Part shown: piece by piece, positions 29,105 to 64,000 of the stretch
How positions within the stretch are numbered: the stretch's first letter is position 1
Layout: each line of letters begins with the position of its first letter
Assembly (NCBI RefSeq): GCF_964194025.1
Contig: NC_134474.1
Coordinates: 18,910,001-18,974,000 of the forward strand
Direction of reading: 5' to 3'
Length of the DNA: 64,000 nucleotides
DNA from: Convolutriloba macropyga
Lineage: Eukaryota
Program-made: the position numbers and the translations under genes
The notes under the pieces: model-generated
Seen by the model: the letters and a program-made list of their open reading frames with translations, nothing else
Databases searched by the model: none
Told to the model about the DNA's origin: nothing

Positions 29105-29155
29105 CTTTTTATTTAATTGCTAAAACGATCGATTATCAAAGCAGAATTGTACATC

Positions 29156-30073
29156 CTATAATTCGTATCTCAGCTCAATACCTCCTTCATACAGTTGACG
29201 AACACAATGTACTTTATTATTGTCCTTCCATTTGTAGAACAAATTTCCCTCTCTTGTCCATGTCGATTCTATTCTTGTGTCGCTTTTCATCAAATTGTGG
29301 AACCTTAGTCTGGCTCTTGTTAAGTCTTCAACAATCGAAACGTTCATGGTTGTGTCATTTTCTCTCAGCTTTCTCTTGTTTCTTAAAATTTCAACTTTGC
29401 TTACTCTTCTGGTGAAACGAACGATAATGGGTCTTTCGTTCTTATTGGATGGAAGACGATGAGCAATCGAGATGTCTTTTTTATCCAATGCTACTCCAAT
29501 ATCGGATGCCAGCTCCACTACGTTGCTTACTGTTCTATCGCTAGACTCCCAAATCGTGCGATTATTTGCATCAGTTGTTATGCGCTCAGACATTCCCATT
29601 ATTCGCAAATTGTCTCGCCTATTGTAGTTCTCCAGCATTTCTGTTTCTGATAACATCTTCAATGTCAGCTCATCTTTTTGATACCTCATTTGTTCTCGAA
29701 TGGAATCTGTTGCTGAATAAATTTCTGATTTTACTTCATTTAAAATTTCCTCCTTTGTGCCATTTAAAACTTTTTCAATCATTTCTTCGATAGCCTGCTT
29801 TACTGAACACTTCACCTCATCAATAATTTTGGGAATAATTTTTGCTACTGCTTCGTCAATGAAACTTAATACGTCCAGATCACCGTTTTCGTTTAATGGG
29901 CTCAATTCACTTCTAGTTCTCTTCTTTTCGGATTTACCGACTGGTGTTTGCAGCGGTGATAGATCATGGAATCTAAGTTGAGGCATATTCACGTCTACTG
30001 AGTCATCTAAACGCTCTTTTTGAAAGTTTTCATGTTTTTTGGCAGGGTTATTTAGCATGCCTCGCGGGCTCAT
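29156..30073 (-). CDS. LINE ORF1 protein (coiled coil + RRM-like)
   Basis: LENYNRRDNLRIMG, DISIAHRL, PIIVRF, IVEDLT and WTREG motifs typical of L1/CR1-type ORF1p; lies just upstream of ORF2. Confidence 0.85.
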   Translation of the reverse strand: MSPRGMLNNPAKKHENFQKERLDDSVDVNMPQLRFHDLSPLQTPVGKSEKKRTRSELSPLNENGDLDVLSFIDEAVAKIIPKIIDEVKCSVKQAIEEMIEKVLNGTKEEILNEVKSEIYSATDSIREQMRYQKDELTLKMLSETEMLENYNRRDNLRIMGMSERITTDANNRTIWESSDRTVSNVVELASDIGVALDKKDISIAHRLPSNKNERPIIVRFTRRVSKVEILRNKRKLRENDTTMNVSIVEDLTRARLRFHNLMKSDTRIESTWTREGNLFYKWKDNNKVHCVRQLYEGGIELRYEL

Positions 30074-30906: not shown

Positions 30907-30982
30907 ATGTCTACAGTAATTGAGCCGTGGAAATTAATGTCGTTATTGTTAATTATGGCGCTGACGTGGACCACTTTGGAAG
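30907..30982 (+). CDS. Receptor exon 1: signal peptide
   Basis: MSTVIEPWKLMSLLLIMALTWTTLE-G with donor AAG|GTTAGT, phase 1. Confidence 0.7.
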
Positions 30983-33900
30983 GTTAGTAGGCACATTCTA
31001 GTCGCATCAGACTTTCAATCCATATAAACATTGACGGTGATGTTAATCCACCCACACTGAACGTTAAAGTCTCCCTCAGTTCTGTTTGAGGGAATTTGAA
31101 GTGATTTTATTATATCAACATTTAAATGATCACGTCAATTTTTAGGCTTCACACGTCTTTAATAAAGTCTAAAGATTTGGAAATTCGAAGATTTGGAACA
31201 AAACGTAATCAGCACTGATTTGTTAATCCAAGACGTGCATTTCATTGGAGAAGTACTGGTTGAGACTTGAAACCTGTTCTAAACTGTATTATTTACGTAA
31301 CTCAAGGAGAATCAGTAGTTTGTGCTCTCGCCTAATGTTCCAACCGGTAAAACAGAAGAAATGGAAGTTTAAATTTAAAATATGTTCATCGCAGATCTTT
31401 TATTTATTATGTATTCGAAGCAAAATTTAGCTAGGTTTTTGTAAAATGTGACCATGACAGGTGACCAGGTTTTTTCTGGAACAAAAACTTTGTTGATCGA
31501 TTCACAATCACCATTAGAGATTTAAAACATTGTTTCATATTTTAGCAAATAATTTTGCGCTATTTAGCAGATAGTTTCTAGCAAATATAACAAATAATAT
31601 AATTTGTTTTCAACCGAGAGTTGTAGACGAAAATAAGGGTTGAGACATGATTGAAAATCAACTTTCTCTAATTAAATACCGGCGAGAAGTGAACAGAAAA
31701 TTTGGAAACATTTTCTATCAAAAAAGACCCGATGTAAGGTTCTAAAATCTAACGATTCAAAATGTTTTCATCCCTGCGACTCGAGCTTCAAATTATATCT
31801 AACAAGAAAGGTAATATAAAGTGTTAGACAGTCCAAAAACGCGCGACCAGGGATTCAAGAAAGTTTCGCTGCTTGCAGTATAACAAATTCGCGCAGTTTA
31901 ATAATAGCGTTTTTATTGGTTATTTATTACTACAGAAATTACTGAAAGTAGTTATAGAACAAGTAAATAATTGAAAAGAAAAGCTGCCAGAAAAGTTTAT
32001 GAAAACGGCCCACTGCTTTGTCGCATTTTCAATTCTTATCCATTTTTTACACCTTCTTTATAATGCAAAAATATCAGTTGTGGTCGTTTATTATCAAGTA
32101 AAATTAATTGATAAGAGAGAAACATATGATAAACAACTGCACATACCAGAATTTGGAATGCCAGAATTGTGGAATGCCAGAGTTCTAGCGACGTGCCAGA
32201 GTTGAATACCTTTAAAGAACTGAATAATTTAGGCCTCAATTGGACCATAGTTCTTGATTTTTTACAAAGTTTTTTCTCATTTTTTTAGCACAAGTGACGT
32301 AAATTTTGTTCGAAAACTCTGCTGAACTTAGCAAAGAGGGAAGAGTTGTCAAAGAGCAAATCTGTTTTTGGTCTTTGACGAAAGTTGTTGAAACTAAATT
32401 TGTTTTTACAAAAATTAGAAGGCTCACTGTCTGTGCCTCAATTAAACAACAAGCAGATCTAATTGTTGGTACTAGGCTTGCTGTTCAAAGCATGATAATG
32501 GCTAAAAACAAAAAAAAATCAGTAAAATTGTATATTTTTAAAATTGTGGCATTTTATGTTTAACTAAAAGTAGTAGGTTCGGAAATATATTCCTTCCGAA
32601 GTATTTTTTTTCCTAGATCGAATTGAGTTGTTGAAAGTGAAGCCTGTAATCTTAATTGAAGTTATATTGAAACAGATCTTGTTTACAACGATCTGATGAT
32701 TGGAAATGGCTCGCAAATGAATTTGAAACTGATATTGTCAGAAAACTTTTTCACATCGGTTGAATGAACCCATCCTCTTTTGATTATCACAGTTTGCAAA
32801 AAAATGTTGTTTCATTCAAATATTTGTTCAAATTCTGTTAGATTTTTGCTGCCACGGAAGAAGTATTGAATTGATTTATCGACAGATTTTCCTTTTCGTG
32901 AAATCCGTTTTTGAGAAACAAATCAACTGCAAAATTTGGGTATGCCTATTATAATATCAATTAATTATGTATAGTTTTCTTATTTACCCGGAGTATAATT
33001 GTATTTATCGGTATTTGTATATTTAGCCTTGAGCGATATTAATAGCCGCGAAGCGTTAGCTGAGGCTATTATTGGCCTTCTCTTGGTTTTTTTTTGCGAC
33101 TCGAAGAGGAGTATTGGTTTTTACGACTCGAAGAGGAGTATTGGTTTTCTTAAGGTTTTTTTTTACCGGAAGTACTATTCGTTCAGACAATGTTTTGACC
33201 TAAAAGTGAAAGCGAGTAAAATTGCAGTGTGAACTAATTTTTTCCGAGCGAGAGAAGTTTTTTGATCATGCGCTGCGTTTAGTGAATGACTTTTTGACTT
33301 TGAAAAGTAGTTTTTGACTGAATGGCACATATAGATAACCGTTTTAGCCGTTTTTTCGTCTAAGTGGCCTAGTTTTTTTGCTTGTAATTTGGTTTTTTGT
33401 AGAAATAATTTTAAATCGATGCTATGTTGAAATGTAAACTCCGGAAATTGATAGCACAGTTTTTTGCATAGCCTGAAATTGCGTTTCAAATGCGAAATGG
33501 GCACATATTTCCTGATTTTTTAGTTAATTTTTGGTTTTTTTTTCTATTAATTTCGTCATTTTTGGATCTTTTAGCTGTTTTTTTGTCAAAAATTAGTTAA
33601 TTTGGCAACTTCACTTTGATAATTCATATGATAACTCAATGCCTCTTTCTACCTCGATGTAATTTTGTTTCATAAAATTGTACATTTGCTAATCCACTTT
33701 TCGTAGTTTTTTGCCAATTCTTTTCAGTTCTTTGTTTGTATTTTGCTTTTAATTACTAGAACTAATATTTTAGGGAACATTAGGGACTTTAATTTTGTTT
33801 CAATAAAAATTCAATCATTTTTTGGTGTTAAATTTTTGAAAAAACAGATAATTTTTTTTTCATAAATGCAGTCTTAAATATTTTTGGACTACTTTTTTGC

Positions 33901-36900
33901 AAAATGTTTCATTGTTTCGTATGTCTGAGTTCTGCTTTTTCTTGTTTTATTCTGTTTAGCAAGTTGGATTTTTGTCTCGAATGACTCGTTGTCTTTTCTG
34001 TGTCTCGAATGCTGTTCAATGAAATGTACTCGTTTTTCTTGATTTTATAAATTTGATTTTTAACTTTCAAAAATCAAGAATTGGTCTTTTTGTTACGGTG
34101 TTCCTAACATTGTGTCCATATTCTTCACATTCTCGTTTGTATCATTCTAGTTTTGTCCTGGCACCTAATATTTATTCGTTATATTGATTTTTTCAGTTGT
34201 TAAAAAATTGAATGAATTCAGCTTTTTCTTAGATCTTGGTTTCTTCGGTTTGCAATTGATTTAATTCAAAATAAGGCAGTACTGGGAGTTTGCTAGAAAG
34301 TCTTTTCCAACATTTCCATTTTTTACTATTCATTGCAATTTTCTTCCCGGCTTCGTGTTGTTTTCGGACGATTTTTTGCCTTTGAATATTATTCTGTTGC
34401 TTTTGTTTTTCTATGATTAATTTAATTTTTGAATTAGTATGAAATGATGTTGTCTAGCATATATACAACAAGAAAGAACCATGTATTATTTTTGTCCTAA
34501 TTGCCGTGATTAGAAATCTAATTGTAGTGGTTCTCTGATTCTTAAGTTTGAGCACTCTTTTTTGAATAATTTTGACTTTCCTGTCTTTTTTGAAAAGTTT
34601 TTATCTGCCGTTTGCTTTCGCGATCTTTTTGAGATTAGAATAATTAATTATCTGAGGTCAATTGATGGCCCTGTTAGCTTTGTCAGGCTATCAGTTTTTT
34701 GACCATCCTAAAATTTCAGACTTTTTTAACGTTACCAAACGTTTTCAATAATAAAATTTTGCTGCATTTTCTTTCTCTTGGTGACAGTGGTTTAAATTTC
34801 ACCGATTTTTAGATCAGACCCGGGGAGGTAATGAGTTAATGGTTTAATACAAAAGGTAATGGCTCCAGCTTTTCGTGAAGTTTTGGTGCTTCGAGTCGCT
34901 TCCGGAATTCTTCCGGCTATGTTTATTTTTTTTGGTCGTCAAGATTTTTGTTACGACCATATGACGTCACATGCACTTCAAATCTGCTTTTTGTTCATTA
35001 GTTCATGCAATTTCAACTGAATTGCGTGTATGACGTCATTTTTCACTCTTAGTGGAGCTAGTTTTTTTTGTTCATTCGCGTGATTAAATTTTTGGTCATT
35101 CGTGACTTACCACACTCTTAAAAATGACTTCCTCACTCTGAAATTGACTTTTCTTTGCTTTAATTCAAAGAGATAAGGTCAAAGGAGTGTTTGCCACTCT
35201 TATTGAAGGTTGTTTAAGAGCAGCTAATAGAAACAGCACTAAGTTATACAGATTCTTAATCACCTTAATTGAAAAACAATAAGCTTCTTTTTGGTCTGTC
35301 TTTTTTTACCTTCTTTTTGAGACTGCAGATCTATGAAGCTATTGCGGCTATTTTCTGGCAATTTGCCGGCAATGTTTTGTATATTTTCCTAACCCCCAAT
35401 TAGTTTGAAGGCTTGGAATAAAAATTTTGCCTTTTCTTCACTAATAATCTATCATGAGATGGAAAAAATAAGGGTACATCGATCCATGGGATCAGGTGTC
35501 TTAGAATGATGAATGAAAATAGACTTGTTTTTTGTGAATTTTTAAGCTGGAGAGAAAGCGGGTAAAGCTGTTGAGAAAATTGAGTTTTCGATCACGATAT
35601 AGCATTTACCGGCTTTGGTCACATTAATCTATACAATTAAATTGTAATTAGCGAATGGAAAACAAGTGAACCTTCAACACTGACACAATCTGCAATCTGC
35701 GCCTTTTCGTTCTCTAAGTCTGTTTAAATTTCACTTTTTTTGTGACAGGTAGCTCAGACCCAGTGAGAAAGGCAACTGATTGCAAACACGGTACCACCAA
35801 AGAGTATTTTGACAAACAGTTCCAGATGTCTCGAAAACAGGTAGACGAGACGTTTGACAGTTACTGCTACACAGAAGATCTGACCACATACAAATGTTGT
35901 CTTGAGCCTTGGATGGGCGGGAGTGGATCCATGATCAATAACTACACGGTTTCTCTAGTGTAAGTTAGTCTCGGTCCACATTCAATGAAATAACTGTCAC
36001 AAAGAAACCATTGAGTTCCATGCTGTTTGGGTTGGTTGTCAGAACACAATACGCAGACTAATATTTCACAAAGTTCACCAAGCTAAGTATGTAATAGAGG
36101 CGCTTATCCTGTGTTTTTTTTATGATACCCCTAGAAAGCTAGAAAGGCCACTTTTCTGCGACTACGCTTTGGATGGAAAACCACAGACTAGAAACCTTTT
36201 ATTATTTGTCTTAATTTGATCTTAATGTTCAAAAATTAAGTTTTTCTCTTCAGACCATTTTCAGCCAATTAACACTGTGACGATTTTGCAGCTCGGAACG
36301 AGATAATCGTTTTCTCAATATAAGTATAACTCAGCCGTTTTTTGTCGAATTCGTCCATTTGTTTTGCTTTCGTTCGTGGAAATACCTCTGAAATTGATAC
36401 CACAGTGTTTTTGAGAGCCTAACAATGCGTTTCAAATGAAAATGGGAGAATATTTCGCGCATTTTTTTGGATAATTTTGGGCTTTTTTCGTTGATTTGTT
36501 TTTTAGATATTCAACTAGTTTTCAAAAGTCAGTGCAGATGGCAACTTGGGCTTGATAATTTGCGCATCGAATGCCTCTTTCTAATGTGACTTGTTTTGTC
36601 CTTATCAAATTGTAAACATGCTATTCCGATTTTGGCCGTTATAGTCCAATTTTTCGGTTTTTGTGTTCGTATTTTGGTTTGAAGTTCTAGAAACACTTTT
36701 TCGTACACTCAGGGATTTTGATTTCGTTTCATTAATTCATGATTTTTGGCATTGAGTCTTTGAAATTAATTAACAAATTTTTCAGCTGCACTTTTGTTTT
36801 GACACTTTTTAACATTTTTCAATGTTTGGAATATCTGAACTCTGTTTTCTCTTTTTCTTTATTTTTTGAATATCTGAACTCTGTTTTCTCTTTCTTATTT

Positions 36901-39900: not shown

Positions 39901-42900
39901 ATTGAGATATGTTTTCTTTTTTATTTATCCGTACAGGTAGATAGCTAAGTAGTTTTTCGAAGCATCGATTGATAAAAGATGTTTTTTTTTCTACCTTGAT
40001 TTTTTCAAATTTATTTTAGCGTCAAAAATCAAGAATTTTTTTTCGTAATTTTCTGTACAATGAGTCCTTATTCTCCACAGTCTGGTAGGTATCACTCTAG
40101 CATTCTCCTGAGGCCTATGATTTTGTTTGCTCTGACTTTATCAGTTGTTTAAAAAGTTAAATGATATCGGTCCTATTCTTAGGTGTTTTTCCTATTTTTT
40201 TATTTGCAATTTTTTCCTTTGATATAATGTAACATTGAGATTTTGCTAGATTTCCTTTTAAAAGTTTTGAAGGGTTATTACTTTCTCTGTATATTCGTGG
40301 GACGTTGGTTTGGATAATGCACGAGTTTTTTTTTGCATTTGAGTATTATTCTGTTTCGGCCTTTTTCATTAAGAATTTAATCATCAATAATTTTTATATG
40401 TGTGATAGGTTGAACTCATTTCATCTATCTCCAACCAGAGAGAAGTATATCACATTTTCCGCATTGCTGTCCCTTCAAAACGAAAAAAAACATGTTTTTG
40501 AAATACGTCTCAACTTTTAGTGTTCTTTTTTTGGAAAAATTCAATTTAGTTTCTAAGAAATTTATCGGCTTTGTTTTTATTATCTGTCTTTTGGGCCGTA
40601 GAGCTGATTCAGGAAATCTAGGTCTTTAAGACTAGTAGTTATTTTATGATTTTTTTGGCCCTGTCACTTAATGAGCCTATCAGTATGTGACCATATTAAT
40701 AATTTTGGGGCAATTTTTGCATCAAATGTTTCCAGTTTTTGTAAAATGTTTCCAGTTTTCAGTATTTTTAAGTTAAAGTATTTTTTGTTTTGGCTATGAT
40801 TGGTTTTGGTATTGTTAGTTAATGGTGCAGTACTTGTTGTAACTTATTCCCATGTCAGTGATCAAATCTTTCTAGTTATGATAGCCTTTTTTCCAAATTT
40901 TTTGATCAAATCTGGTGAGGTAAAAAGCTACTGTTTTAAATCGAAAGGGTAACGGTTTCATTTGCAATTCGTTTTTTTGCCGATGGGTCGCTTGGACGTT
41001 TCGATTCGCTTTCAGAATTTTTCCGATTATTTTCTTGCCGGAATTACTAAGTGTTCAAGTGTCGTTTTGATCGGGAAGCGAAAGTGAGTAAAAGTGCAGT
41101 GTAAACTTATTTCTGCTGCTTGAGATAAGTTTTCTTTTCATGCGTTGCATTGATTGAATGACTTTTTGACTTCAAAAATTTTTCCGAAAGAATTGTGCGA
41201 ATAGCTAACCGTTTTTGCCGTTTTTTCAGTCGTTTTGGCTCATTTATTTTTTGCTTGTAGCTAAGTTTTAACGAATTTTTTTTATCAAAGCTGCACTAAC
41301 TTCTAATGCTGCGCAATAGTGTTCTCAGAGGGCACAATAAATTTCAGAATTTTTTGAATTTGGGTTTTTTGATAGTTTCTGTATTGTTTGTTCTTTGAAC
41401 GGACTTTTTGGAATCAGTGTATGTAGCATTTTTGCATCGCATGCGTTGCCTTTTCAATTTTTTAACGTGAATAGATTTTCTGTAAAGCTTTAATTTATGC
41501 AAAACCAACAGGTTCTGGGTTTTTTGTTTTTCTTACAATTGGGCTTTCGATTTTGGTTTTGTTTAATAAAACGAGCCTTTTCGTGCATCGTCAAGGCTTT
41601 AATTTTTGTTTTAATCAAGATCAAATGTTTGCAGTAGGTTTTGAATTTCACTGCAAACAGCAAGTTCAAACAAATGAAAATCAAAAACTTTGATTCTTTT
41701 TCAATATTTTTTAAATAAGTGGTCGAATTTTGTTCTCCTTGTTCCATATTAAGAGGAAAATAGGCAGGTAAATTTTTGAACCATCAATGTTTAATAATGG
41801 AAAGCATTTGTTTTTTTTTTGTTTTTTTGACATTTTAGTGAAAATGATTAAAATTGCCCTGTCAAATAACTTTTTCTCAGCGAGAGAAGTTTTTTAATCA
41901 TGCGCTGCGTTCAGTGAATGACTTTTTGGTTTTGAAAAGTTTTTGAGGGACTGGCGCAAATAGATCAAAGCTTTCAGCCGTGTTTTAGTCCGTTTGCGCC
42001 ATTTTTTTTTAATTGTAACTTTGTTTTTGTAGAAGTTTGATCGATGCTACATGCAATGACACGCAACCATCTGAAATCATGACCACAATGTGTCTGAAAG
42101 CCTAATAGTGCGTTTCAAGCTCATATTTCTCATTTTTTTTTTGTAATTTTTGGCTTTTTCCTTAATTTTTTTATTTTCCCCTCTATAAGCGGACTCTTTT
42201 TATCAAATAAATACACATGTCAGGGTCTTGTTAATTGCTCTCAAACAAAGTGTAGCAATTATATAAGTTCTGTTGGTCTTTTTTATGCAATTTTTCGCTT
42301 GACCGATTTTTCGTCTGACCCATTTGACTTTTCCTTAAAAACGGGATAAACAGGTAGCGCCCAGTGGGCATTAAGTTCTCGTAGAGCCTTTCAGCTAACT
42401 AATCTCCAAGTATATTATGCGATTCACAGAAACTGTTTTGGAGACTTACACTTATGGTGTGAAGAAGTTGCTTCAAATTTTACACCCCACAAACCCCCCC
42501 CCCCCCCAAAAAAAACAGCCTCCTCCCCCCCCCCCCCCCCCTACATCAGCACCCTTCACCCTCTCCACCCAATCCCCATCCCTGCACATTGTTCAGGCCG
42601 TAAGGGCCCCGTGCAGCCGAAAATCCGCCTTCCACCTTTGCCAGTTTTTCTGTTAATGTTTTAAAATGTTAGGTTTAATTAACTAGGTGTTTCAGTTCAG
42701 CGGGGATTGTCTGTTTTTCTGTCCGAGTTGTTTCCGGAATTCTTCCGGTAATGTTTTTTTTACCGGAAGTACTTTTTGCTCAGGCGGCGTTTTGACCAAA
42801 TAGTAATAGAGTGAATTTACAGTGTCAACTAACTTTTTTCTGAGCGAGAGAAGTTTTTTGTTCATGCCCTGCGTGCAATGAGTGACTTTTTGACCTTGAA

Positions 42901-45900
42901 AAGGGTTTTCGAGAGATGCCGCATGCATTGATATGCAATCATCTGAAATTGATCCTAAAAAGTTTTTGAAAGTCTAATAATGCGTTTCAAGTTCAAAATT
43001 GGCCCGGTTTACTCATTTTCTTGCTTCTTTTTTGGCTCTATGAGCAGACTTTTTTCCACCAAATTAGTGCAAGGCTTTTCTTTTTAATTGCTCTCAATTG
43101 AAGTTTGTAGCAGTTCTTTTACTCCTGTTGGTCTTTTTAATTAATTTTTTCGCGTGAGCGATTTTTTGTCTTAACCACTTGACTTCTTGTCGTCAAAAAT
43201 GGGATAAACGGTTAGCGCCCAGTGAGCATTAGTTCTCCCAGAGCGTTTCAACTCACTAGTGTTCAGGTATGCTATGCGATCCACTGAAACTGTTTTGGAG
43301 ACTTATTCTAATGGTGTGAAGAAGTTCACCTCATCCCCCTCCCACCGTTGCCCCCAACTGTTGCCCCCCGGTAACCCCCCCCCCCCAGCTGTGCATACGT
43401 CACGCCCCTTCAATTAAGCTTACGCCAGACTCACTAAACCGTGGCTAGGTACTGATCTAGCCAACAGCTCACTGGTTGTTTGAGAGCGATTCGCCCTACG
43501 TTACCGGCTTTTTTGATAATTCTTGAATTGGACGCCTCTTTTTGATGTTATATCTTTGTACTGAAACTTCCTACTGAAACATGAAGATGTCTATGTAATT
43601 TTCTTAAACTTCAATTGCTTAATACTAAGAAATTCTTTTTTTCACCTCATTTTTATTGTGATTTTTAGAATTTCCAATTTAATTTTTTGGTTTTTCAGAA
43701 ATTGCGAACTAGTTTTTTATGTCTATTTCACTGTATATATCTCTTCAGTTTGTGCCCCCAGTACGTTATACAATCCCAGTTATAGAGCACGTGCCGTTAC
43801 ATAGTTAACCATCCTGTTAAAATATGGCTCATGCGTCTGGGGGGTGCAAATAATATGCGCCCAGTAGGCTTGGGGGCACAAACGGAAAATATCCGTTTTT
43901 AATTCGCCTTACCTTTTGATTAGGTTTTTTTTATTTTTACCTAATTCCCAATTTTCACGCTTGACTTCTGAGTTAATTCACTTTGTTTCAACTGAATTGA
44001 TTCCAAATTCTTTCGCGCATTGAATTACGCAATGTAGTGAAAACGGTCAAAGTCAAAAGAGCAAAATCAAAAGAAGCAGGACAAGCATATAAAGCATAAG
44101 TAAGGAGTTTTTTGTTCGACTGTAGCGGTCAGCTGAATTTTAATAAAAATTGGTGTTCTAATTGCCCACTGAGAGGGTAGTTTTGTTCTTAATGTCGATC
44201 ACTCAATGCGAGGAGACTTTTGTATCGTCTGCAATAGGATTGTTTATGTAACCCAATGAGCTGAAGAGAACGAAACCCCTTTGGGACTCATATGTAACAG
44301 AGAAAAATTTGCACTTCAAAGAAAGAGACAGATTGATATGGTAAATGAGCAAAGAGATTTATCATCATTTAAGCTTTGTGATATATTTGAACTGCTAATA
44401 TGCTTTGATCAGGTACTGAGTCAAAATTGCTGTCAAATTTAGGATTGGGAATATTTTGTCTGCTGAGGAGTTGCACAAGTAAGTATGCTAAGACTCATTA
44501 TGATAACTGGTTAACAAGGATGTGTGGTTTTCATTCTAAGCTCAGCACTGTTAAACACGTTTCCAACACGAATGTAAAGCTGTCATTATCAGTTTATAAT
44601 CCGATGGTTTGTTGTCCCGTAATTAACCGTCCTTGTTCTACATTAATTTTGCTACTGGAATCAATAAAGTTAATAACAAGGTTTGGTCTATTTCAAAAGA
44701 GACCCACTCAATAACAGCAGATTGCGTGACTTTGAAGTACCTAAAAAAACTGACAATAGTCGAGAACCACGTAGTTAGAGTAGTAAGCCAGAATTTCGGG
44801 GTGACTTTAGCAGAGTTATAAAACTTTGTTTGAAACATGAAAAATACGATGCGGAGATCTGGCATTTTAAACCTTGTTCGTGCGTTTTTCACGTTTAACT
44901 GCTGAAAAGAATTTGACTTTGACTGAACAATCTTATTTTCCTTTCAAAACTAACAGGATCGAAATCTTTTGGCATTTACCTAATTTTATACAAATGAACT
45001 CGATTTCTGCTTTGCAGTGCTTCCAATAATGGAGAACGCCCTGTTGAATGGAAAATCTATCCCATTAATGACAACTCGGTTATAATCAACAACGGAAAAT
45101 GTGTTCAATTTCCCATACCGCAATCAGGTGCTACGTGCAAGGTCAAATTATTATATTCAACAGTTGGTCAGAGTGAAGGGTCACAGAATGTAAACAAGGA
45201 TCAGGGTTTGTCTTCTGCACTCTACTATGCCAACTTTATGCACCCGGAAATGCCCTACTCAAGTAAGAGACCACTAAACTTCCTTTGCTCAAGTTATCTT
45301 GACGTCTAAAAATCCAGCACGCTTAGTTCACTTGCTTATCAATATCGCCAAGGAGAGTCGGCAATGTGCGTTTGCACATAATGCTTCGACCACGCTCAAC
45401 CACGTGTTTGACTTAATTGTCTACCAAATGAGGAAGAGATAGAAAACTTTCAAAAAATTCATATTTTTAAAAGTAATTGATGAAGCCATTCAAATACTTG
45501 CTTTAAGCTGCAACCACTATACAAATGAAACCATAATTCATTTGAGTGCCAATTATATCTGACGTCAAATAGAGTAAGAGATAAGACAAACAAAAAAATC
45601 AATTAGAACAAAAGCATTACTTACGACTGGAACTCAATGTCTATCTATTTTTTTAATACAAAACTTAATGAAGAAGTCAAAATATCATCATATAGAAAAT
45701 TAACTAACAAAATTAATTTGAATTTTAGCAGACAAAATATGGGAGCTGTCTTCGTTGAGACAGACGAAAAACAAGAAGGGCAAAATTAAACAATGATTTA
45801 ATAGTTTTTGAAAACAATTCATTTCAAAGTCATGAAAACCAATAGCTATCAACTGGAATAATTGAATGACTTCGTTTATAACATCCTGCAAAGCCATTGA

Positions 45901-51900: not shown

Positions 51901-54900
51901 ATAGGGTATATCTTGTTTTATATAGTTACTGATTCGAGTTGATTTCGAAATGTTTGGTCTGTTTCTTTGTTCGATTTTTTTCTATCGTTTTTTGGTTTAC
52001 ACAAGACAGGATTTTTTTCTTGACTTCTGTCTGACGATAAGCGGTTGCATTTAAGATTGTGAGCAAATCTTGCAGAATATAGTTACAGTGGCTGTGGATA
52101 AATATCGAAGTTGAAAGAATGGGGATTGACTGATAAAGGCGGGTAACAAAGTCGGTTATCGGATTTAAGTAGAGCAAATGCTAATTGTTCATAGTATTCA
52201 AGGAGATCAGATTAGAATTTGAATTATAATTGTGTAGTTTACCGGAAAATGTACTGTAATTTGCAATACCTTGACTCTGGACAAATTATACTGAAACAAA
52301 TAATGTAATGGATAGGGTATATCATGTTATATATAGTAACTGAATCGAGTTGACTTCGATATGTTTAGTCTGCTTTTTTGTTCGTTTTACTTTTCCTTAT
52401 CGTTTTTTGGTTTACACAAGGCAGGATTGTTACGCTTGACTTCTGAGTGACGTTACTCGGTAATTAAAACGAGAGAAGTGATTAATACGATGTGCAAATT
52501 GTGCCGAATATAATGACAGGGTCGGGGTAATTATAAAAGTTGAAAGAAATGGGGTCGCCTGATAATGGCGGGCCACAAAATGGGTTATCGAATTTAAGTA
52601 GACCAAATGCTAATTGTTCATATTATGAATGAAATAGAGTTCAGTTCCAAAGCTGAATATAGTGTTATTGTATTCTACCTGAGATTGTACTCCAATATGT
52701 AATACTTTAACTCTAGACGATTTTTACTGACATAAATTGTTAATGGGATAGGGTATATCTTGTTTTATATAGTTACTGATTCGAGTTGATTTCGAAATGT
52801 TTGGTCTGTTTCTTTGTTCGATTTTTTTCTATCGTTTTTTGGTTTACACAAGACAGGATTTTTTTCTTGACTTCTGTCTGACGATAAGCGGTTGCATTTA
52901 AGATTGTGAGCAAATCTTGCAGAATATAGTTACAGTGGCTGTGGATAAATATCGAAGTTGAAAGAATGGGGATTGACTGATAAAGGCGGGTAACAAAGTC
53001 GGTTATCGGATTTAAGTAGAGCAAATGCTAATTGTTCATAGTATTGAAGGAGATCAGATTAGAATTTGAATTCAGTATAATTGTGTAGTTTACCGGAAAA
53101 TGTACTGCAATTTGCAATACCTTGACTCTGGACAAATTATACTGAAACAAAAAGTGTAATGGATAGGGTATATCATGTTATATATATAGTAACTGAATCG
53201 AGTTGACTTCGATATGTTTAGTCTGCTTTTTTGTTCGTTTTTCTTTTCCTTATAGTTTTTTGGTTTACACAAGGCAGGATTGTTACGCTTGACTTCTGAG
53301 TGACGTTACTCGGTAATTAAAACGAGAGAAGTGATGAATATGATGTGCAAATTGTTCCGATTATAATGACAGGGTCGGGGTAATTATCATAGTTGAAGGA
53401 AATGGGTTCGCCTGATAATGGCGGACCACAAAATGGGTTATCGGATTTAAGTAGACCAAATGCTAATTGTTCATAGTATGAATGTAATAGAGTTCAGTTC
53501 AAAAGTTGAATATAGTGTTATTGTATTCTACCTGAGATTGTACTCCAATATGTAATACTTTGACTCTAGACAATTTTTACTGACATAAATAGTTGAAGGG
53601 ATAGGGTATATCTTGTTTTATATAGTTACTGATTCGAGTTGATTTCGAAATGTTTGGTCTGTTTCTTTGCTCGATTTTTTTCTATCGTTTTTTGGTTTAC
53701 ACAAGACAGGATTTTTTTCTTGACTTCTGTCTGACGATAAGCGGTTGCATTTAAGATTGTGAGCAAATCCTGCAGTATATAGTTACAGTCGATGTGGATA
53801 AATATCGAAGTTGAAAGAATGGGGATTGACTGATAAAGGCGGGTAACAAAGTCGGTTATCGGATTGCTTTCAAGCGTCTGCTCCTTGTTCACAGTATTTA
53901 ATGTAATAGAGATTAGATTAGAAGTTTTTTTCAGCATAATTGTGTAATTTAGCTGAAATAATACTGCAATTCGTGTTACTTTGACTCTAGACAATTGCTG
54001 ATAATTCGTAGCATTGTTTCTTTTCCTGTTTCATACATTTTGCGTCAAGGGAAAGAGTATTAGCCGTTTTCCTGCAACACAAATTCTTTCTATCTTTCAC
54101 TGGTTTTGTGAAAGATTTTCCTGGATCCTTTGTTTTTTTGTAACAAATGTTTTCAAACAAATTTATTTCAGCCTTCCCATCTTTTTTATTTGTTTTTTTT
54201 GTTTCAATCTTGAAAAATGGATCGACCAAAATTGACTTTAGAAAAGCCAGGGTAGCAAGAATGATTGGAGCTACATAATTGCGCCCTACTGTTGGTGAAT
54301 ATGATGTTGGTGAATATGACGAATATGATGTGCAAATCTTGCTGAATATAGTGACAAGTTCGGGGTAATTATCGAAGTTGAAAGAATGGGGATCGACTGG
54401 TAACGGTGGGCCGCAAAGTCGGATATCGGATTTAATTAGAGCAAATGCTAATTGTTCATAGTATTGAAGGAGATCAGATTAGAATTTGAATTCAGTATAC
54501 TTGTGTAATTTACCTGAAAATGTATCGCAATTTGCAATACTTTGACTCTAGACAAATGTTACTAAAATAAATCGTTTATTGGATAGGGTATGTCATGTTA
54601 GATTAAGTAACTGATCCGAGTTGATTTTGAGATGTTTGGTCTGCTTCTTAGTTCGCTTTACTTTTCCTTATCGTTTTTTGGTTTACACAAGGCTGGATTT
54701 TTACGCTTGACTTCTGACTGACGTTTCTCTGTAATTAAAATGAGAGAAATTATGAGTTTGATGTGCAAATCTTGCTGAATATAGCGACAGTGTTTGGGGT
54801 AATTATCAAAGTTAAAAGAATAGGGATTGACTGACAACGGTGGGCCACAAATTCGGTTATCGGATTTAAGTAGAGCAAATGCTAATTGTTCATAGTATTG

Positions 54901-57900
54901 AAGGAGGTCAGATTAGAATTTGAATTCAGTTTAATTGTGTAGTTTACCGGAAAATGTACTGCAATTTGCAATACCTTGACTCTGGACAAATTATACTGAA
55001 ACAAATAGTTTAATGGATAGGGTATATCATGTTATATATAGTAACTGAATCGAGTTGACATCGATATGTTTAGTCTGCTTTTTTGTTCGTTTTACTTTTC
55101 CTTATCGTTTTTTGGTTTACACAAGGCAGGATTGTTACGCTTGACTTCTGAGTGACGTTACTCGTTAATTAAAACGAGAGAAATGATGAATATGATGTGC
55201 AAATTGTGCCGAATATAATGATAGGGTCGGGGTAATTATCAAAGTTGAAAGAAATGGGGTCGCCTGATAATGGCGGGCCACAAAATGGGTTATCGGATTT
55301 AAGTAGACCAAATGCTAATCGTTCATAGTATAAACGTAATAGAGTTCAGTTCAAAAGCTGAATATAGTGTTATTGTATTCTACCTGAGATTGTACTCCAA
55401 TATGTATTACTTTGACTCTAGACAATTTTTACTGACATAAATTGTTAAAGGGATAGGGTATATCTTGTTTTATATAGTTACTGATTCGAGTTGATTTCGA
55501 AAAGTTTGTTCTGTTTCTTTGTTCGATTTTTTTCTATCGTTTTTTGGTTTACACAAGACAGGATTTTTTTCTTGACTTCTGTCTGACGATAAGCGGTTGC
55601 ATTTAAGATTGTGAATAAATCCTGCAGTATATAGTTATAGTGGCTGTGGATAATTATCGAAGTTGAAAGAATGGGGATTGACTGATAAAGGCGGGTAACA
55701 AAGTCGGTTATCGGATTTAAGTAGAGCAAATGCTAATTGTTCATAGTATTGAAGGAGATCAGATTAGAATTTGATTTCAGTGTAATTGTGTAATTTACCT
55801 GAAAATGTACTGCAGTTTGCAATACTTTGACTCTAGACAAATGTTACTGAAATAAATTGTTTATTGGATAGGGTATGTCATGTTAGATTTAGTAACTGAT
55901 CCGAGTTGATTTTGAGATGTTTAGTCTGCTTCTTTGTTCGCTATACTTTTCCTTATCGTTTTTTTGGTTTACACAAGGCAGAATTTTTACGCTTGACTTC
56001 TGACTGACGTTTCTCGGTAACTAAAATGAGAGAAATTTTGAATTTGTTGTGCAAATCTTGCTGAATATAGCGACAGGGTTTGGGGTAATTATCAAAGTTA
56101 AAAGAATAGGGATCGACTGATAACGGTGGGCCACAAATTCGGTTATCGGATTTAAGTAGAGCAAATCCTAATTGTTCATAATATTGAAAGAGATCAGATC
56201 AGAATTTGAATTCAGTATAATTGTGTAGTTTACCGGAAAAGGTACTTCAATTTGCAATGCCTTGACTCTAGAGAAATTATACTTAAACAAATAGTTTTGT
56301 GGATAGGGTATATCATGTTATATATAGCAACTGAATCGAATTGACTTCGATTTGTTTAGTCTGCTTTTTTGTTCGTATTACTTTTCCTTATCGTTTTTTG
56401 GTTTAGAGAAGGCAGGATTGTTACGCTTGACTTCCGAGTGACGTTACTCGGTAGTTAAAACGAGAGAAGTGATGAATACGATGCGCAAATTGTGCCGAAT
56501 ATAATGACAGGGTCGGGGTAATTATCAAAGTTGAAAGAAATGGGGTCGCCTGATAATGGCGGGCCACAAAATGGGTTATCGAATTTAAGTAGACCAAATG
56601 CTAATTGTTCATATTATGAATGAAATAGAGTTCAGTTCAAAAGTTGAATATAGTGATATTGTATTCTACCTGAGATTGTACTCCAATATGTAATACTTTG
56701 ACTCTAGACAATTTTTGCTGACATAAATTGTTAAAGGGATAAGGTATATCTTGTTTTATATAATTACTGATTCGAGTTGATTTCGAAATGTTTGGTCTGT
56801 TTCTTTGTTCGATTTTGTTCTATCGTTTTTGGTTTACACAAGACAGGATTTTTTCTTGACTTCTGTCTGACGATAAGCGGTTGCATTTAAGATTGTGAGC
56901 AAATCTTGCAGAATATAGTTACAGTGGCTGTGGATAAATATCGAAGTTGAAAGAATGGGTATTGACTGATAAAGGCGGGTAACAAAGTCGGTTATCGGAT
57001 TGCTTTCAAGCGTCTGCTCCTTGTTCACAGTATTTAATGTAATAGAGATTAGATTAGATTTTTTATTCAGTATAATTGTGTAATTTAGCTGAAATAATAC
57101 CGCAATTCGTGTTACTTTGACTCTAGACAATTGCTGATAATTCGTAGCTTTTAGTTTCTTTTCCTGTTTCATACATTTTGCGTCAAGGGAAGGGATATTA
57201 GCCGTTTTCCGTCAACACAAATTCTTTATCTTTCATTGGTTTTGTGAAAGATTTTCCTGGATCCTTTGTTTTATTGTAACAAATGTTTTCAAACAAATTT
57301 ATTTCAGCCTTCCCCTCTTTTTTGTTTGTTTTTTTTGTTTCAATCTTGAAAAATGGATCGACCAAAATTGGCTTTAAAAAAGCCAGGGTAGCAAGAATGA
57401 TTTGAGCTACATAATTGCGCCCTATTGTTGGCAAGAACAAATCTACATACAGAAAACCGTGTGAAACGGGCTTGGTTCAGATGTCTACGGGTTAAAAAAC
57501 CAGAATTGTGATATTTTTATCGAAAAACTCTTGATTTGACTAAATAGTTGCTGGAATAAATTTTCGTTTTAGTTCACTACCACATTGACAAGGAAGATGG
57601 GTTTTCTTCAATAAGTCGGGCAGACAACATTGTCAATATAACAGTTAGAACGCCAGAGCTCAATAGGCAATTTTCTCTCACAGCGGATTGGCAATTGTGT
57701 GTTTGTGTCGCAACAACTACTGAAGTTGAGAACCGGCAGCCGATCCATAAGGTACGTATCTAAGCCATTCTAAGCCGTTTTTCGTGTTTTTGAACAAATT
57801 TGATGTGTTTGCAACGAGACGTTTTTATGTAGTCATGTTTCCCCATGGTTTCCCCGCATTCAATTTTTATTTTTTTAAAAAAATGTAAGTCAATTAATGT

Positions 57901-60900
57901 TTTTCGAACTTAAGCATCTTTCTACTCTACCGCGAATTCAAATCAAAAGTGCTTTCAAATGGGTTTCCTTTACATTTTGTATGTTAGGCAAACATTTTAT
58001 TAATTACATATTGTACTTCACTTGGCAAAATTAAGTGGTCAATTGTCCTTAATGCTTGTCTTCAGAAGAATCTGAGTTGATAAAATACCATCAAAACGCG
58101 CTGTTCGAGTTCTAATGGGACCCCTCCCCAAAATAAATTTGCATTTTTTCGCCGAATAGCTCTTAAACTTTTTCCTGCTTTTTTGTTAATACCAAAATGC
58201 TTGGCTTGAGCAGCTGCTATGGGAGATAGACATTACGAGGAGGTTGTAAAGAGTACGCAATTCATATAAATTTAAATCATTTTTGATTTCGAATACAACT
58301 GACACTTCTTATTAGAAATGTTATTATAGAAATATTATTATATCATTACTTTGTTTTCAAGTAGGTTTTCAAGTACAGCCTTTCAGTGTTCCAGCTGGCG
58401 CTCTCCAATGTTTCAAAAAAATTGAGATAAAAATTATCGAAAGAATCACAAGCGGAAGTTACCTGCAAAAAATGATATTGAAACTCTGTCCAATTCAATC
58501 CTTGACAGAAGTATTTTCTTTGAACTTTTGATTTTACCGCGCATTTCTTTCTCTGCTGTTTTTTGAAAGATCATGACACTATGGAATTGAATATGATTAA
58601 TTGCTCTCAAACGAAGTTGGTAGCAATTATATCAGTCCTGTCAGTCTTTTTTAATGCGATTTTTTGCTTTACCGATTTTTCTATTTTGACTTTTCCTCCT
58701 CAAAAACGGGATAAACAGCTAGCACCCAGAGTGCTTAAAGTGCTCTTGGAGCCTTTCAGCTCTCTACTCTCCAAGTATCCGATTCAAAGAAACCGTTTTG
58801 GAGACTTATACTTATGGTGTGAAGGGCGGTGAGTAGAGGTTGACCCCCATCCCCAACAACAATCCCCTCTCTCCACAGTCCCCACCCCTGCACATCGTTC
58901 AGGCCGTAAGGGCCCCGTGCAGTTGAAGATCCCCACATCAGCGCCCCCCCCCCCCACTGCGCTCAACTCATGCCCCTTCAATTAATCTAAAGCTTGCCTA
59001 ACTTAACCGTGGCTAGCTACTGACGAATCCAACCGCTCGCCGGTCGTTAGAGAGCAATTCGACCGACGTTAGTCGGTTATGTTTAGGCTTATCAATCGAT
59101 TTATAATTATATGGTTTAATTGCAGCAGTAAGGATATGTCAGTTTTGAATAATTTGACAACGCATTAAAAACAATTGAGGGAAACTTTACAGCAGTGGTC
59201 GCTTTTTGATGTTTGTAATGTGACTTTGGCTAACTTTAGGACGATACAATGTTTTAATGCTATTAATAAACAAAGGTACACGTTATTACTGCAGTTGTTT
59301 TTAATTGCAGTTATGACTGCAGTAAGAAATAGTTTTCAGGTTCTGATTTTGCTCAAGTTACTTGACTTGTTTAATACTGTGTCATTTTGCACGGACACCA
59401 AAAGATACTTCGTTTCTCTAACTTTTGTTTCTTTGTTTCTGCAAATATTGATAACCACTTCGATTTTCGTTTTTTAGTGAGCTTTTATTGTAAACGTGTG
59501 TGTCTTTTTTAATCCTCGACCGTCTGTTAGCTTTTGTTCCAGATCATTCTTTGACTTCTCTTGAGTTATTTTTTCACGCTGGAGTTCTTCATTTTTTAGT
59601 GATCTAAGTTGCTCTTTCTGAAATAATGTTTGTTGCTAAGGTTAAAGCAATTGTGAGCGAAACAAATTGAAAACCTTGTAGCTTATTTATTAACGCAATT
59701 GGGTTAGCACAATCAGTTACTTGACATTACCAAATGCAAGCCAATGATTTTAACGGCTTTGTCAACGCTGATTTTGAAATTTTTAGTTCCGTGTGCACTT
59801 AATGCTGTTTTTTTTTTGTCATTTATAACAGTTGTCATAAATTGTCTTATGATAACAATTTTTGTTTCCAGGACAACAGAAGCTTAGATTTTGATTTTTA
59901 TAGCTTGGACAACGCTGATTTTTGAGGAAAAAGTATAGTTTCTAGTTTGGCGAGCACTTATTGCTGTTTGCTCAAGTTCTTTTTATGGCGAAGGTGGAAT
60001 GAGTTGTATAATTGTAGTTCGTCGGCAGTGCAACAGCCTAGCTTTTGAACTGCCGAATTATTTTTTTTAGGTTTATGAGGATTTCTTGCTTTTTAATTGA
60101 TTTGGAGCAAAGCTGGATGCAATTATTTTAGTTTTATGTCTGACTTTGAGTTTTACGCGATCTAAATTGATCTCATTCAAAATTTCAGTTTGCGGCAGTT
60201 TACTGCTAAAATTAAAATGAAAAGTGTGCCAAAATCGGTTTACTTCGTTTCAGCCGACTTTTCATATGACTCAGTTGTTTTATTTGGTGTAATCAAAGTT
60301 TTCAAAAGTGCAGGATCTTTTCCGTTCGTGCCCACCCCACTACGTTATGCTCCCCCCAATTGACATAGTAAATCATAATGTAAAAATTTGGCACGTGCCT
60401 ATGTGGGGTGCTGATAATATGCGCCCACTAAGCTAGGGGGTGCACAAACGGAAAATATCCAAAATGCATTTGAATTCATTTCTATTTACTGAAGGCGATG
60501 TCCGCCCTCTGATTATCCGCTTAGGTGAAAGGTCGAACTAAATTAGACCCCACCTGTCCCTTAGTGCAGCCGGTTATGTTAAATTACAAATTCTTAGTGA
60601 ATTTAATGATTTTGAATTATAGAAAATTACCGAATCAAAGTAGTTGTCTTTTCAAGACCCGTAAAGTATTTAAATTTTAGTGAAGTGAGGTATTTTTCAG
60701 ACACAGGTGGGGCTTGAACCCACTTCTGATGCTGATCCGGCCAATGTGGAGCCACTTACGGTATTTTACATTAGTATATTGAGATGGGGTAAAGTTCTGT
60801 TTTTGTTATGTTGCCATGTGTTGTTGGACTGTTAAGTTCTTATTTTGATCTGCTCAATGGCCATTTCCCAAACGTCGTTCTGTGTTTATATTTTAACTAT

Positions 60901-62993
60901 TTTGTGTTTGTGGGTAGAGGTAGATGATTGCTCTCAATGTACGTTTAAAGCTGAATTCTTTGAATTCGCAATAGATCGTCAATTAAATGCTTCGGCGTTG
61001 CTGCGAAAATTAATATGTTTGAGCTTCAATCCAATAATTTGATAAACGTTAACTGACCGCGCACTCAAAGGATCTTGAGCTTCGCTCACTCAATTTTCCC
61101 ATCCTTTGTATTAGCTGCGTTGTGTTCTCAGACTTTATTATTTATTATCTAACACTTTTTACATATTTTAAACTTCATTGATGGTGATCTTTTTTCTGAG
61201 AATTGTCTCGACTAGTCGAGATGAAAAGTTTAGAAAAATGAGATAAACCGTTAATGGCTAAGGGATATATTGGACAGCTTTTTTTAAATTAAAAGAGGAA
61301 ATGTCTGAAATATTCCACTGTTCAATGAAGTATAATGCATAACAGAGTGCAGGGGGTAATGTTGAAGGGTTCTGATTAATGTTTTACTGCTTCACTGTAC
61401 GCACGCTTTTTTCTTTTACAAATTTTGACATTTCATGACATAATTAATGAAAAAAATTGTTATATTTTTGGTGATGTCTAGTGAATTGTGTTGGGTTGGG
61501 TGTTGGTGTTAATGACTTAAATAACTCTTGTTTTTAAAGAGGCTCGGAAATGTTCGGTCGCATATAATGTCCCATTCCCGCTCATCCACATTCTTGGCGT
61601 AATTGTTTGCAATTGCGGTAAAGTTAAAAGCTTTATCTTTACCTCAAATATAATACATAATAGCAAATATAATACATAATAGCAAATATAATACATAATA
61701 GATAAATACTAAGTGACTAGCTTGGAGAAACATTGAACTGGGCAAGAAATTTGTTTAATAAGAAATCAGGCTGGAGCCACCTTTGTAGCAGAAAAATGAC
61801 AATTTGTAGTAGAAAAATGACAATGCCACCTTTGTAGCCGAAAAATGACGTATACCTACTTTGCGAAAGAAAATGGGAAAAAACAACGAAATCGAAAAAT
61901 ATGAGCAACTGCGAAACCCAAAATGTTTTTGAATGTTAGTGGCCTGAAAGTAAAAAGTAAAAAAAACATAAATCAGAATGCTTAGCCACTTCATACCTTC
62001 CATTTCTAAAAAGCAGCTAGCATCATTTTCTAATTCCATTTGAGCGACTAAATAACAAAAGTATTAAGACATTTGAGTAGATGGGGTCTGCTATTTTTCA
62101 AACTGAAACCTCTTTTGATCAAGACAACAAGAAAATCAACAATTATCGCAGAAAAAAATTATTAAATTTTGTTACATGAAAACTTAAAGATGTTCAATTA
62201 TAGTTCGCTAAGAAGCCGATAAGACATGTCATTATTTAGACTAAATTACAACACAACGGTAAGTTAAGTTATCAGTTTATAACTATAAAGTGTGCAGCTT
62301 TATTTTCACTCATGCTCCAGAAGAGATAATGTAACAAGAACCCCATATAGAATAGAGACATGCGCACATAATCCGCTGAACATTTGAAGACATGTGCACA
62401 TAATATTTGAAGACATATTGAAGAGATATTTTAAGAGATATTTTAAGAGATATTGAAGAGATATTTTAAGAAAACTCGAGAAAAAACGGGTAATAATTTA
62501 CAAATAAAAACTTGATTTCCTGAAGTTAGAATTTGTCAAGATTTCAAGAAAAGTAGTCACTTATTTCACTGGTAACGTTGTGTCGGAAAGTTTATTGTCG
62601 GTGACGGAATGTTCTGCGCTACAAAGCTTTTGATTGCAGCCCTCTTGCACTTGCACTGCCCGCCATTTCTATAACAAAATTTCGCTATCAGTCCGTGTAT
62701 GCATTTTAAATTAAATATAAGCCAATTTGCAAGTGATGTGTTTCAGTGCTCATATAAATCATACCCACACGATAACACCTACTTGATCGAGACCCGAAAT
62801 ATCTACGACGATCTGCCTCGTGATAGACCTTTCGATATCTGTGTGGCAGTGGCGAGAGAACTGTATGGGTCTTTTGGCTACGATCGACTCTGTCAGCACA
62901 TGGACTTCTCGGACGAATTCATTATCATTGCTTCCAAGGCAGCCATTACTCTAGAGGGTAATTCTGTCCGCATTGATGAATCACTGCTCCGGA
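30907..62993 (+). CDS. Cytokine-receptor-like protein (signal peptide + two-FN3 cytokine-binding module); partial, continues beyond the window
   Basis: Exons 30907-30982, 35749-35959, 45018-45262, 57573-57751 and 62747-62993 (or 62957) all have GT-AG sites and splice into one stop-free ~319-aa frame with intron phases 1-2-1-0-1. Confidence 0.75.
35749..35959 (+). CDS. Receptor exon 2: N-half of FN3 domain 1 with C-x9-C
   Basis: ttttttgtgacag| SSDPVRK...CYTEDLTTYKCCLEPW...NNYTVSL |GTAAGT; phase 1 to 2. Confidence 0.78.
36219..38418. repeat. Recent tandem duplication, 2 x 1099 bp
   Basis: cttaatgttcaaaaattaag starts at 36221 and 37320; the copies differ by only scattered substitutions. Confidence 0.95.
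43737..43894. mobile_element. MITE family A, copy 3
   Basis: Internal cccagtacgttat..gagcacgtg..gcgtctggggggtgc and right TIR GCACAAACGGAAAATATCC. Confidence 0.75.
45018..45262 (+). CDS. Receptor exon 3: C-half of domain 1
   Basis: ctttgcag| ASNNGERPVEWKIYP...NGKCVQF...TCKVKLLY...PYS |GTAAGA; 245 nt open; phase 2 to 1. Confidence 0.75.
45349..46680. mobile_element. Family B repeat copy
   Basis: Head with palindrome ATGTGC-GTTT-GCACAT; body similar to 21767-23700. Confidence 0.5.
50590..57430. repeat. Complex satellite, ~410-436-bp monomers with higher-order structure, in receptor intron 3
   Basis: The marker actgaWtcgagttgaYtt recurs about every 430 bp (about 14 monomers). An 847-bp dimer period is shown by identical ORFs at 51926 and 52773. 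A ~430-bp junction block occurs twice (~53865 and ~57000). Confidence 0.93.
57573..57751 (+). CDS. Receptor exon 4: N-half of domain 2
   Basis: ttcgttttag| HYHIDKED...IVNITVRTP...DWQLCVCV...IHK |GTACGT; phase 1 to 0. Confidence 0.72.
58660..59080. mobile_element. Family C terminal fragment
   Basis: Homologous to 42300-42640 and 43140-43510; ends in hairpin ACCGAC-GTTA-GTCGGT. Confidence 0.6.
60313..60460. mobile_element. MITE family A, copy 4
   Basis: GGATCTTTTCCGTTCGTG...CACAAACGGAAAATATCC; TSD AAAGTGCA/AAAATGCA (one mismatch). Confidence 0.8.
60700..60760 (-). other. tRNA-derived SINE-like head fragment
   Basis: Minus strand TGGCTCCACATTGG (A-box-like) and GGGTTCAAGCCC (B-box); no full cloverleaf. 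Confidence 0.3.
62747..62993 (+). CDS. Receptor exon 5: C-half of domain 2 with WSXWS-position segment
   Basis: gtgtttcag| CSYK...DDLPRDRPFDICVAVA...HMDFSDEFII; phase-1 donors after 62957 (G|GTAATT) or 62993 (A|GTTAGT). Confidence 0.72.
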
Positions 62994-63922
62994 GTTAGTT
63001 GCTTTGTAAATTGCTGTCGAACAAATTTTGAAGTAATCATTGTTGTCGCTGTGTGTCTCTCTTGTGCAAATTATTTTCTCGACTGTTTTTTGACTATTCG
63101 ATTAACTTCCAGTTTTTTGACTTTTTGAATTTTGCGTGATTTGCATTCGTAAATTGACCTTCAGTTAAAATCTCGTGTTTCACTTTAAATGTTACTAATG
63201 AGCCATGCAACCTAGAGAAACAATATTTGAGGCCCTCGTGTTTGAGCCCCCCATTGACCCGTTTCTAAGCTCTCGCCCGACTGAAGCAGGCTATAATAGA
63301 ATCGAGCCTCCGTACGTCGTTCGACAGCAATTCGTCCATCATTAGTCGTTTATATTGATGAAAATTTGTAGGGCCTCTAAGCAATAAGTTAACTGTTGCT
63401 GGTTTATCTTCTGCCAATAGTGCGTTTTCCTCTGAATTTTTCAAGCTTTATGGATAAATTATTCTGTACATAGTTTTAAAAAATTGGAAACAATTAAATT
63501 GTAATGTTTATGTTCCACCAACTTTCCTTATATAATAAAAAAAACTTTCCAAACGATGGCATAGGAACGGCAATTTATTTTAATATCTGGAAAGCGATAG
63601 CTAGGGCTATTATAGACTTTCTCTTGGTTTTTTACAATTAAGATACCTTGAATTGTTTTGCTCTTTTTCAAGAAATGTTCACACTTTTTTGACCTTTTTC
63701 GTGTCAATGAGAAGTCGAAATTGGAATAGTGATTTTAGTTACGCTCCTGAAATTTTAAATTTCTTTTAAATTTTGTACTTCATTTTTTTTTCTTTTATTA
63801 CTGACCAGGCTAGAAAACAAAGATGCAGAATCCTATCATGGAAATTTTGCCTAGCTCTCTCTCTCTCTGTGTCGGTTGGGTTTTTCCTTCACTTTCTCGT
63901 TCACGTTCTTGTCTATCTCACA

Positions 63923-63925
<3 letters not shown>

Positions 63926-63971
<46 letters not shown>
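63926..63971. repeat. (TC)n microsatellite / polypyrimidine tract
   Basis: About 22 TC units followed by CTTAAC and TTCAG at the window end. Confidence 0.9.
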
Positions 63972-63974
<3 letters not shown>

Positions 63975-64000
63975 TTAACTCTGTTGATACCGCACTTCAG

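Follow-up and report, generated by a model that had tools for sequence, protein, structure and literature searches.

A gene expressed in the acoel Convolutriloba macropyga has the exon layout of vertebrate cytokine-receptor genes

Outside vertebrates, few cytokine receptors have been described: the Domeless type of insects, a gp130-like receptor of Ciona, and CRLF3, which occurs across eumetazoans. Does an acoel carry a gene of this kind? The question is raised by a 64,000-nucleotide (nt) stretch of Convolutriloba macropyga DNA (contig NC_134474.1 of assembly GCF_964194025.1, positions 18,910,001 to 18,974,000; hereafter the window), where an earlier note, made from the sequence, had proposed that short exons scattered among repeats join into a cytokine-receptor-like gene running from position 30907 to the window end. 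The chromosomal assembly of this animal has been described, and gene annotation is unmentioned there (PMC13650328). We find that the locus is an expressed protein-coding gene, with three splice junctions present in RNA (exon 3 to exon 4, exon 4 to exon 5, and exon 5 to a next exon). Its exon layout matches that of vertebrate cytokine-receptor genes, and its orphan product, which probably crosses the membrane once, may be a very divergent receptor of that architectural type or, at about even odds, an unrelated lineage-specific membrane protein.

We rebuilt the gene model from the sequence and obtained five exons (E1–E5; Table 1), which when joined form an uninterrupted frame of 319 codons and one further nt. 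The peptides quoted in the earlier note all lie on the + strand at the positions given there, and its description of five short exons with canonical sites in one stop-free frame holds: the donors resemble GT(A/T)AG or GTACG, and all acceptors have a pyrimidine tract ahead of AG. The intron phases of the rebuilt model are 1,2,1,0,1, reproducing the series that had been proposed, and the last three of these borders are also seen in RNA. Within the window the gene spans ~32 kb and comprises these five exons, with at least one more past the window end, separated by repeat-filled introns of 4766, 9058, 12310 and 4995 nt.

Splicing of the 3′ half of this model is directly visible in sequencing data. 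Four sequencing runs hold exon 5, and three of them (X1, X4 and X6) have even depth over exons and introns and look DNA-like, whereas run X5, from 2016 and Convolutriloba macropyga, behaves as a transcriptome. Word depth in X5 is 283 in the E4 bin and 256 in the E5 bin versus 0–12 across most of intron 4, with a value of 17 in the bin that follows exon 4. An X5 contig omits positions 57752–62746, reported as 57749 to 62745 with the label 'GT..AG, cut +2' at depth 339, and thereby joins E4 exactly to E5. Upstream, a loose end of X5 before position 57573 (...CCCTACTCAA) is identical to 45233–45262, the last 30 nt of E3, and runs 223 nt further upstream. Downstream, a 1380-nt X5 contig with a depth of 184 departs from the genome exactly after 62993, at the GT, and continues for 1132 nt of further sequence; a search of the window with the 30-nt loose end after 62993 gives no match, down to a length of 12 nt. 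An alternative exon 5 donor at 62957 is ruled out by this placement of the donor at 62993. The transcript E3-E4-E5-next has exactly one stop-free frame. Of the junctions that follow from the earlier proposal, E3–E4 and E4–E5 are thus found in X5 RNA, and E1 and E2 draw their support from codon usage. Two nonsynonymous differences between runs fall inside the RNA-confirmed exons, at 57740 in exon 4 (C>A, Pro>Thr, in X6 and X4) and at 62922 in exon 5 (T>C, Ile>Thr, in X5 and X6).

When codon usage is scored with conserved genes from the window as the training set (0.28–0.32 bits/codon), each of the five exons scores highest in the frame proposed for it. Scores of 0.33 bits/codon for E2 and 0.28 for E5 lie above those of all 45 intronic open frames, which reach at most 0.17. 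Of 35 upstream candidates able to feed E3 in frame, none is longer than E2. Exons 1 and 2 appear to belong to the gene, with codon usage that is coding-like. Open frames alone are no proof of a gene here: 13 frames of 80 codons or more lie on the + strand between 30 and 64 kb, where shuffles give ~6.6, and those that bear the exons do not stand out in length. Gene calls are absent from the record over exons 1–2 in the ENA copy, in which the locus recovered through the frame at 29159–30073 ends at 40073, and at 62699–62995 (+), 61758–62039 (−), 56837–57172 (−) and 48032–48379 (−).

Table 1. Exons of the gene and the visible part of its last intron; a slash marks the exon border.
Feature	Coordinates	Strand	Length (nt)	Residues	Splice borders	Contents
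Exon 1 (E1)	30907-30982	+		1-26	donor AAG/GTTAGT, phase 1	ATG and predicted signal peptide; hydrophobic core LMSLLLIMALTW
Exon 2 (E2)	35749-35959	+	211	26-96	acceptor ...TTTTTTTGTGACAG/G; donor AGT/GTAAGT, phase 2	N-terminal extension, then C65-x9-C75, W80, NYT glycosylation site
Exon 3 (E3)	45018-45262	+	245	96-178	donor CAA/GTAAGA, phase 1	C124-x11-C136
Exon 4 (E4)	57573-57751	+	179	178-237	donor AAG/GTACGT, phase 0	NIT glycosylation site, SLTADW, C220, C222
Exon 5 (E5)	62747-62993	+	247	238-320	donor GGA/GTTAGT, phase 1	LPRDRPFDICVAVA, YGSFG, C269, C286
Intron 5, 5′ part	62994-64000	+				next exon beyond the window

The predicted protein has only two hydropathy peaks, the highest formed by the signal peptide and the other by the last visible stretch. 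Between them lies a predicted ectodomain of ~293 residues with 11 cysteines, two N-x-S/T sites and 3 tryptophans, in which phase 1 introns delimit two units: E2+E3 (152 residues), split internally by a phase 2 intron, and E4+E5 (142 residues), split by a phase 0 intron. Four ectodomain exons thus follow the signal-peptide exon directly, as had been anticipated. A phase 1 intron leads to the next exon, which starts AAATTGTTTTGGTCGC and reads K-IVLVAAAII, a hydrophobic opening with which a membrane helix probably begins; to the extent that it is visible, this exon agrees with the transmembrane helix that the earlier note had looked for past position 64000. With a signal peptide, a two-unit ectodomain and then an exon that opens hydrophobic, the gene is most naturally read as encoding a type I membrane protein, probably a single-pass glycoprotein.

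The arrangement of these exons parallels a known gene plan. Class II cytokine receptor genes have conserved intron phases 1-2-1-0-1-0 over the signal peptide, the D200 region, the transmembrane segment and the intracellular region, where D200 denotes two FNIII-like domains (PMC8863823). The acoel gene has 1,2,1,0,1, the first five of this series, and the sixth lies outside the window; the claim that the pattern is characteristic of cytokine receptor genes accordingly has a documented basis in class II. Taking together this phase series, the order of signal-peptide exon, four ectodomain exons and hydrophobic exon, and the distribution of the two cysteine pairs, one to each of the exons E2 and E3, we give an even chance to the reading that the gene encodes a very divergent receptor of the cytokine-receptor (D200) architectural type. 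On this D200-type reading the ectodomain would fold as two β-sandwich, FN3-like modules, one from E2+E3 and one from E4+E5, and the gene would follow the architecture of helical-cytokine receptors and tissue factor, with a signal-peptide exon, four half-domain exons and a transmembrane exon. A putative extracellular ligand would be bound by the receptor chain where the two modules meet in an elbow, signaling would pass through a putative cytoplasmic tail encoded past the window, and the product would not be a soluble binder. The more specific proposition, that the acoel has a true D200 helical-cytokine receptor which kept the vertebrate-type exon plan (signal peptide, four half-domain exons with phases 2-1-0-1, transmembrane exon) as its sequence diverged beyond recognition, is possible but somewhat doubtful.

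A substantial set of observations weighs against the D200-type reading, beginning with the motifs of class I receptors, which are defined by CX(9-10)CXWX(26-32)CX(10-15)C in the first FN3 fold together with WSXWS (PMC1963337). We searched the spliced model with regular expressions and used shuffled sequences as control, with patterns chosen post hoc. Both C65-x9-C75 and C124-x11-C136 fit class I cysteine-pair spacings, a partial agreement in favor of the reading, but the strict motif finds no match in the joined model: the tryptophan stands 5 residues after the second cysteine versus 2 in the motif, and the gap from tryptophan to third cysteine is 43 residues versus 26–32. WSXWS is likewise absent from the joined model, in which YGSFG at residue 277 is the only instance of [WYF][SG]x[WYF][SG], a motif that occurs in 5.8% of shuffles. 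Also in favor of the reading, a relaxed class I motif including the tryptophan has one match and occurs in 0.4% of shuffles (post hoc), an FN3-like E–F pattern, L-P-x4-F-x-I-x-V-x-V (LPRDRPFDICVAV), occurs in 0.4% (post hoc), and YGSFG takes the place expected for WSXWS. The four-cysteine spacing by itself occurs in 9% of shuffles. Since the two defining features tested are lacking, we do not claim class I membership.

Homology and fold searches, which were run on single-exon pieces, for the most part also weigh against the reading. Pfam searches of each exon piece at E≤10 returned no fn3, EpoR_lig-bind, Tissue_fac, Interfer-bind or other family, and a Caleosin match (E 0.024) was set aside as noise. 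Comparison of each exon by phmmer with all PDB chain sequences, among them the EPOR, PRLR and GHR ectodomains, gave no receptor at E≤10, and the resemblance of exon 2 to the start of EPOR/PRLR/GHR domain 1 that had been suggested is not detectable in this search; an endoglucanase and P450s at E values of about 1 were treated as noise. Exon 3 found no relative among 1.84 billion representative proteins, where three matches (E 1e-6 to 3e-4) were discarded as repeat-inflated: they fall in repetitive proteins that match over many stretches, including two bacterial immunoglobulin (Ig)-repeat proteins. Exon 5 yielded no candidate among 5.8 billion clusters, and Foldseek with the exon 3 piece gave no match at E≤0.001. 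Language-model recognition in the ESM Atlas was low for the pieces tested (1556–1704). By language-model features all ten best named hits of exon 3 are Ig-like/E-set β-sandwich families (0.76–0.79), which speaks for the D200-type reading but by the calibration of the tool is a lead only, and CLIP/defensin-like rows for exon 2 reflect a small cysteine-rich piece. AlphaFold2 models of exon 3 alone (mostly strands, five in number, pLDDT 47) and of exon 5 alone (strands and two helices, pLDDT 51) are too low in confidence to use; the latter places a helix at the supposed F strand.

Three further points concern the gene plan itself. Extracellular domains are often phase 1-1, and the phase series can also be described as two phase 1-1 modules with one internal intron each, a chance match that by our own rough and unmeasured estimate would occur in a few percent of two-domain ectodomain genes, against a naive figure of 0.3%. 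Both modules are 40–50% longer than a plain FN3 domain. The supposed transmembrane helix is visible for 9 hydrophobic residues only (10 codons). Of the divergent invertebrate receptor first proposed, what stands is an expressed gene with a signal peptide, the phase plan and a hydrophobic next exon; the interpretation as a receptor is supported in part.

These observations are accommodated by the strongest alternative, a lineage-specific type I membrane protein, restricted to acoels or to Convolutriloba and unrelated to cytokine receptors, in which two phase 1-1 extracellular modules each gained one intron and the phases, the cysteines and YGSFG are coincidental. The lack of any sequence, profile or structure match of the exon pieces to a receptor family, the failure of the strict class I motif, the frequency of the four-cysteine spacing in shuffles, the oversized modules and the low language-model recognition all speak for it. 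Set against it are the five phases combined with the order of signal peptide, four exons and hydrophobic exon, which fit a documented receptor plan, and the cysteine pairs, which fall in the same exons as in class I receptors; in addition, acoel sequences may be too diverged for sequence methods. We consider this alternative a serious contender that falls a little short of an even prospect, and the odds between a D200-type receptor and an unrelated lineage-specific membrane protein are about even.

The other two explanations fare far worse. A secreted soluble binder, an option that the earlier note had kept, would arise if exon 5 were the last coding exon and were read through its donor, where the frame continues for one codon before a TAG at 62996–62998; left unspliced, the transcript would encode a secreted protein of 320 residues, and X5 depth does average 52 over 62940–63139 and is nonzero just past 62993. 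The 1380-nt contig nevertheless leaves the genome at the GT of 62994 for a sequence with a hydrophobic start, and X5 depth past 63140 is only 2–3. As this is ~1% of exon depth, a soluble form is minor at most, and a soluble binder as the main product is very improbable, the transcript running on into a hydrophobic-opening exon in favor of a membrane receptor. Least probable of all is a non-functional locus (open frames chained by chance, a pseudogene, or transcriptional noise in a repeat-rich region), for which one could cite the commonness of open frames of such length in the region, the lack of homologs and the missing ENA gene call over exons 1–2, but which is contradicted by high-depth RNA spliced exactly at GT-AG borders, a single stop-free frame through at least four exons, coding-like codon usage in frame in all exons, and a signal peptide and hydrophobic exon that are rightly placed.

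The gene is embedded in repetitive surroundings. Directly upstream of exon 1, on the − strand, lies a retrotransposon resembling a long interspersed nuclear element (26269–30073), with a 305-residue ORF1-like open reading frame (29156–30073) followed by frames matching Exo_endo_phos_2 and RVT_1 (ENA gene calls). Intron 2 contains a GC-richer patch at 42000–44900 (0.40 versus 0.33) with several mildly coding-like + strand open frames (up to 0.17 bits/codon), one of them with a long proline run; these have no match in Pfam, and the patch may be an old transposon remnant. Intron 3 holds a tandem array at 54321–57130 with a 434-bp unit in 6.5 copies (78% matches), in which open frames of 83–122 residues recur on the − strand. 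An extremely high-copy element occupies 58540–59139 in intron 4 and is found also at 59340–59539 and 60340–60539, with a summed word depth of 10^4–10^5 in the DNA-like runs (single-copy 5–60) and 7,000–19,000 in the RNA-like run; contig breaks are numerous at this element and carry poly-C loose ends, the element has no Rfam family and its open frames have no Pfam match. Rfam finds no family over 30–64 kb as a whole. Intron 5 includes a perfect (TC)22 microsatellite at 63926–63970. Further upstream, between 3600 and 18300, NCBI gene calls on the + strand comprise a CSTF1-like protein (437 residues), phenylalanyl-tRNA synthetase beta (587 residues), a single-exon DNA polymerase beta (340 residues) and a zf-4CXXC_R1 protein (268 residues), and a 207-residue antisense call lies inside the phenylalanyl-tRNA synthetase beta gene. 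The complete DNA polymerase beta frame is recorded in NCBI GCA_964194025.3, record OZ077305.1, at 18,900,000 plus its position in the window.

What the gene would mean depends on which of the two leading readings is correct. If it encodes a true D200 receptor, the common ancestor of acoels and vertebrates already had the 1-2-1-0-1 exon plan, and the gene would give a starting point for finding ligands and JAK/STAT partners in an animal that regenerates and is photosymbiotic; our literature search on acoels and Xenacoelomorpha with JAK/STAT or cytokine receptors found no paper on the pathway in this group. If it does not, it is still an RNA-validated, well-expressed orphan membrane protein missed by gene calling based on open reading frames, and an intron-phase signature alone is not diagnostic.

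Compared with known systems, the acoel gene shares features with both receptor classes. Like class I receptors (the EPOR/PRLR/GHR group, Drosophila Domeless and CRLF3), the protein has two cysteine pairs of class I spacing in its first module, and its YGSFG (aromatic-Gly-Ser-aromatic) lies late in the second module, at the place of the WSXWS variant of GHR; it differs from them in the strict motif and in WSXWS, and has no PDB or Pfam match. In short single-chain class I receptors the CHD directly follows the signal peptide, as the ectodomain does in the acoel gene (PMC1963337). The CHDs of Domeless and Ciona CLF-3 are encoded by one exon each (PMC1963337), unlike the acoel gene.

With class II receptors (interferon (IFN) receptors, IL-10R2 and IFN-upsilon R1) the acoel gene shares a plan in which the signal-peptide exon precedes four exons that encode a two-module ectodomain and then a hydrophobic-opening exon, a gene plan also found in tissue factor, a class II relative. 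Class II receptors and the acoel gene alike are without WSXWS. Class II modules have ~100 residues each versus 152 and 142 in the acoel protein, and no sequence or profile similarity to the acoel exon pieces is detectable. The host also differs, this gene being from an acoel and class II receptors having been described, to our knowledge, from vertebrates. Because Domeless of insects and a gp130-like receptor of Ciona are already known (PMC1963337), a CHD-type receptor in an acoel would extend the known receptor systems with a very divergent form rather than found a new kind of system.

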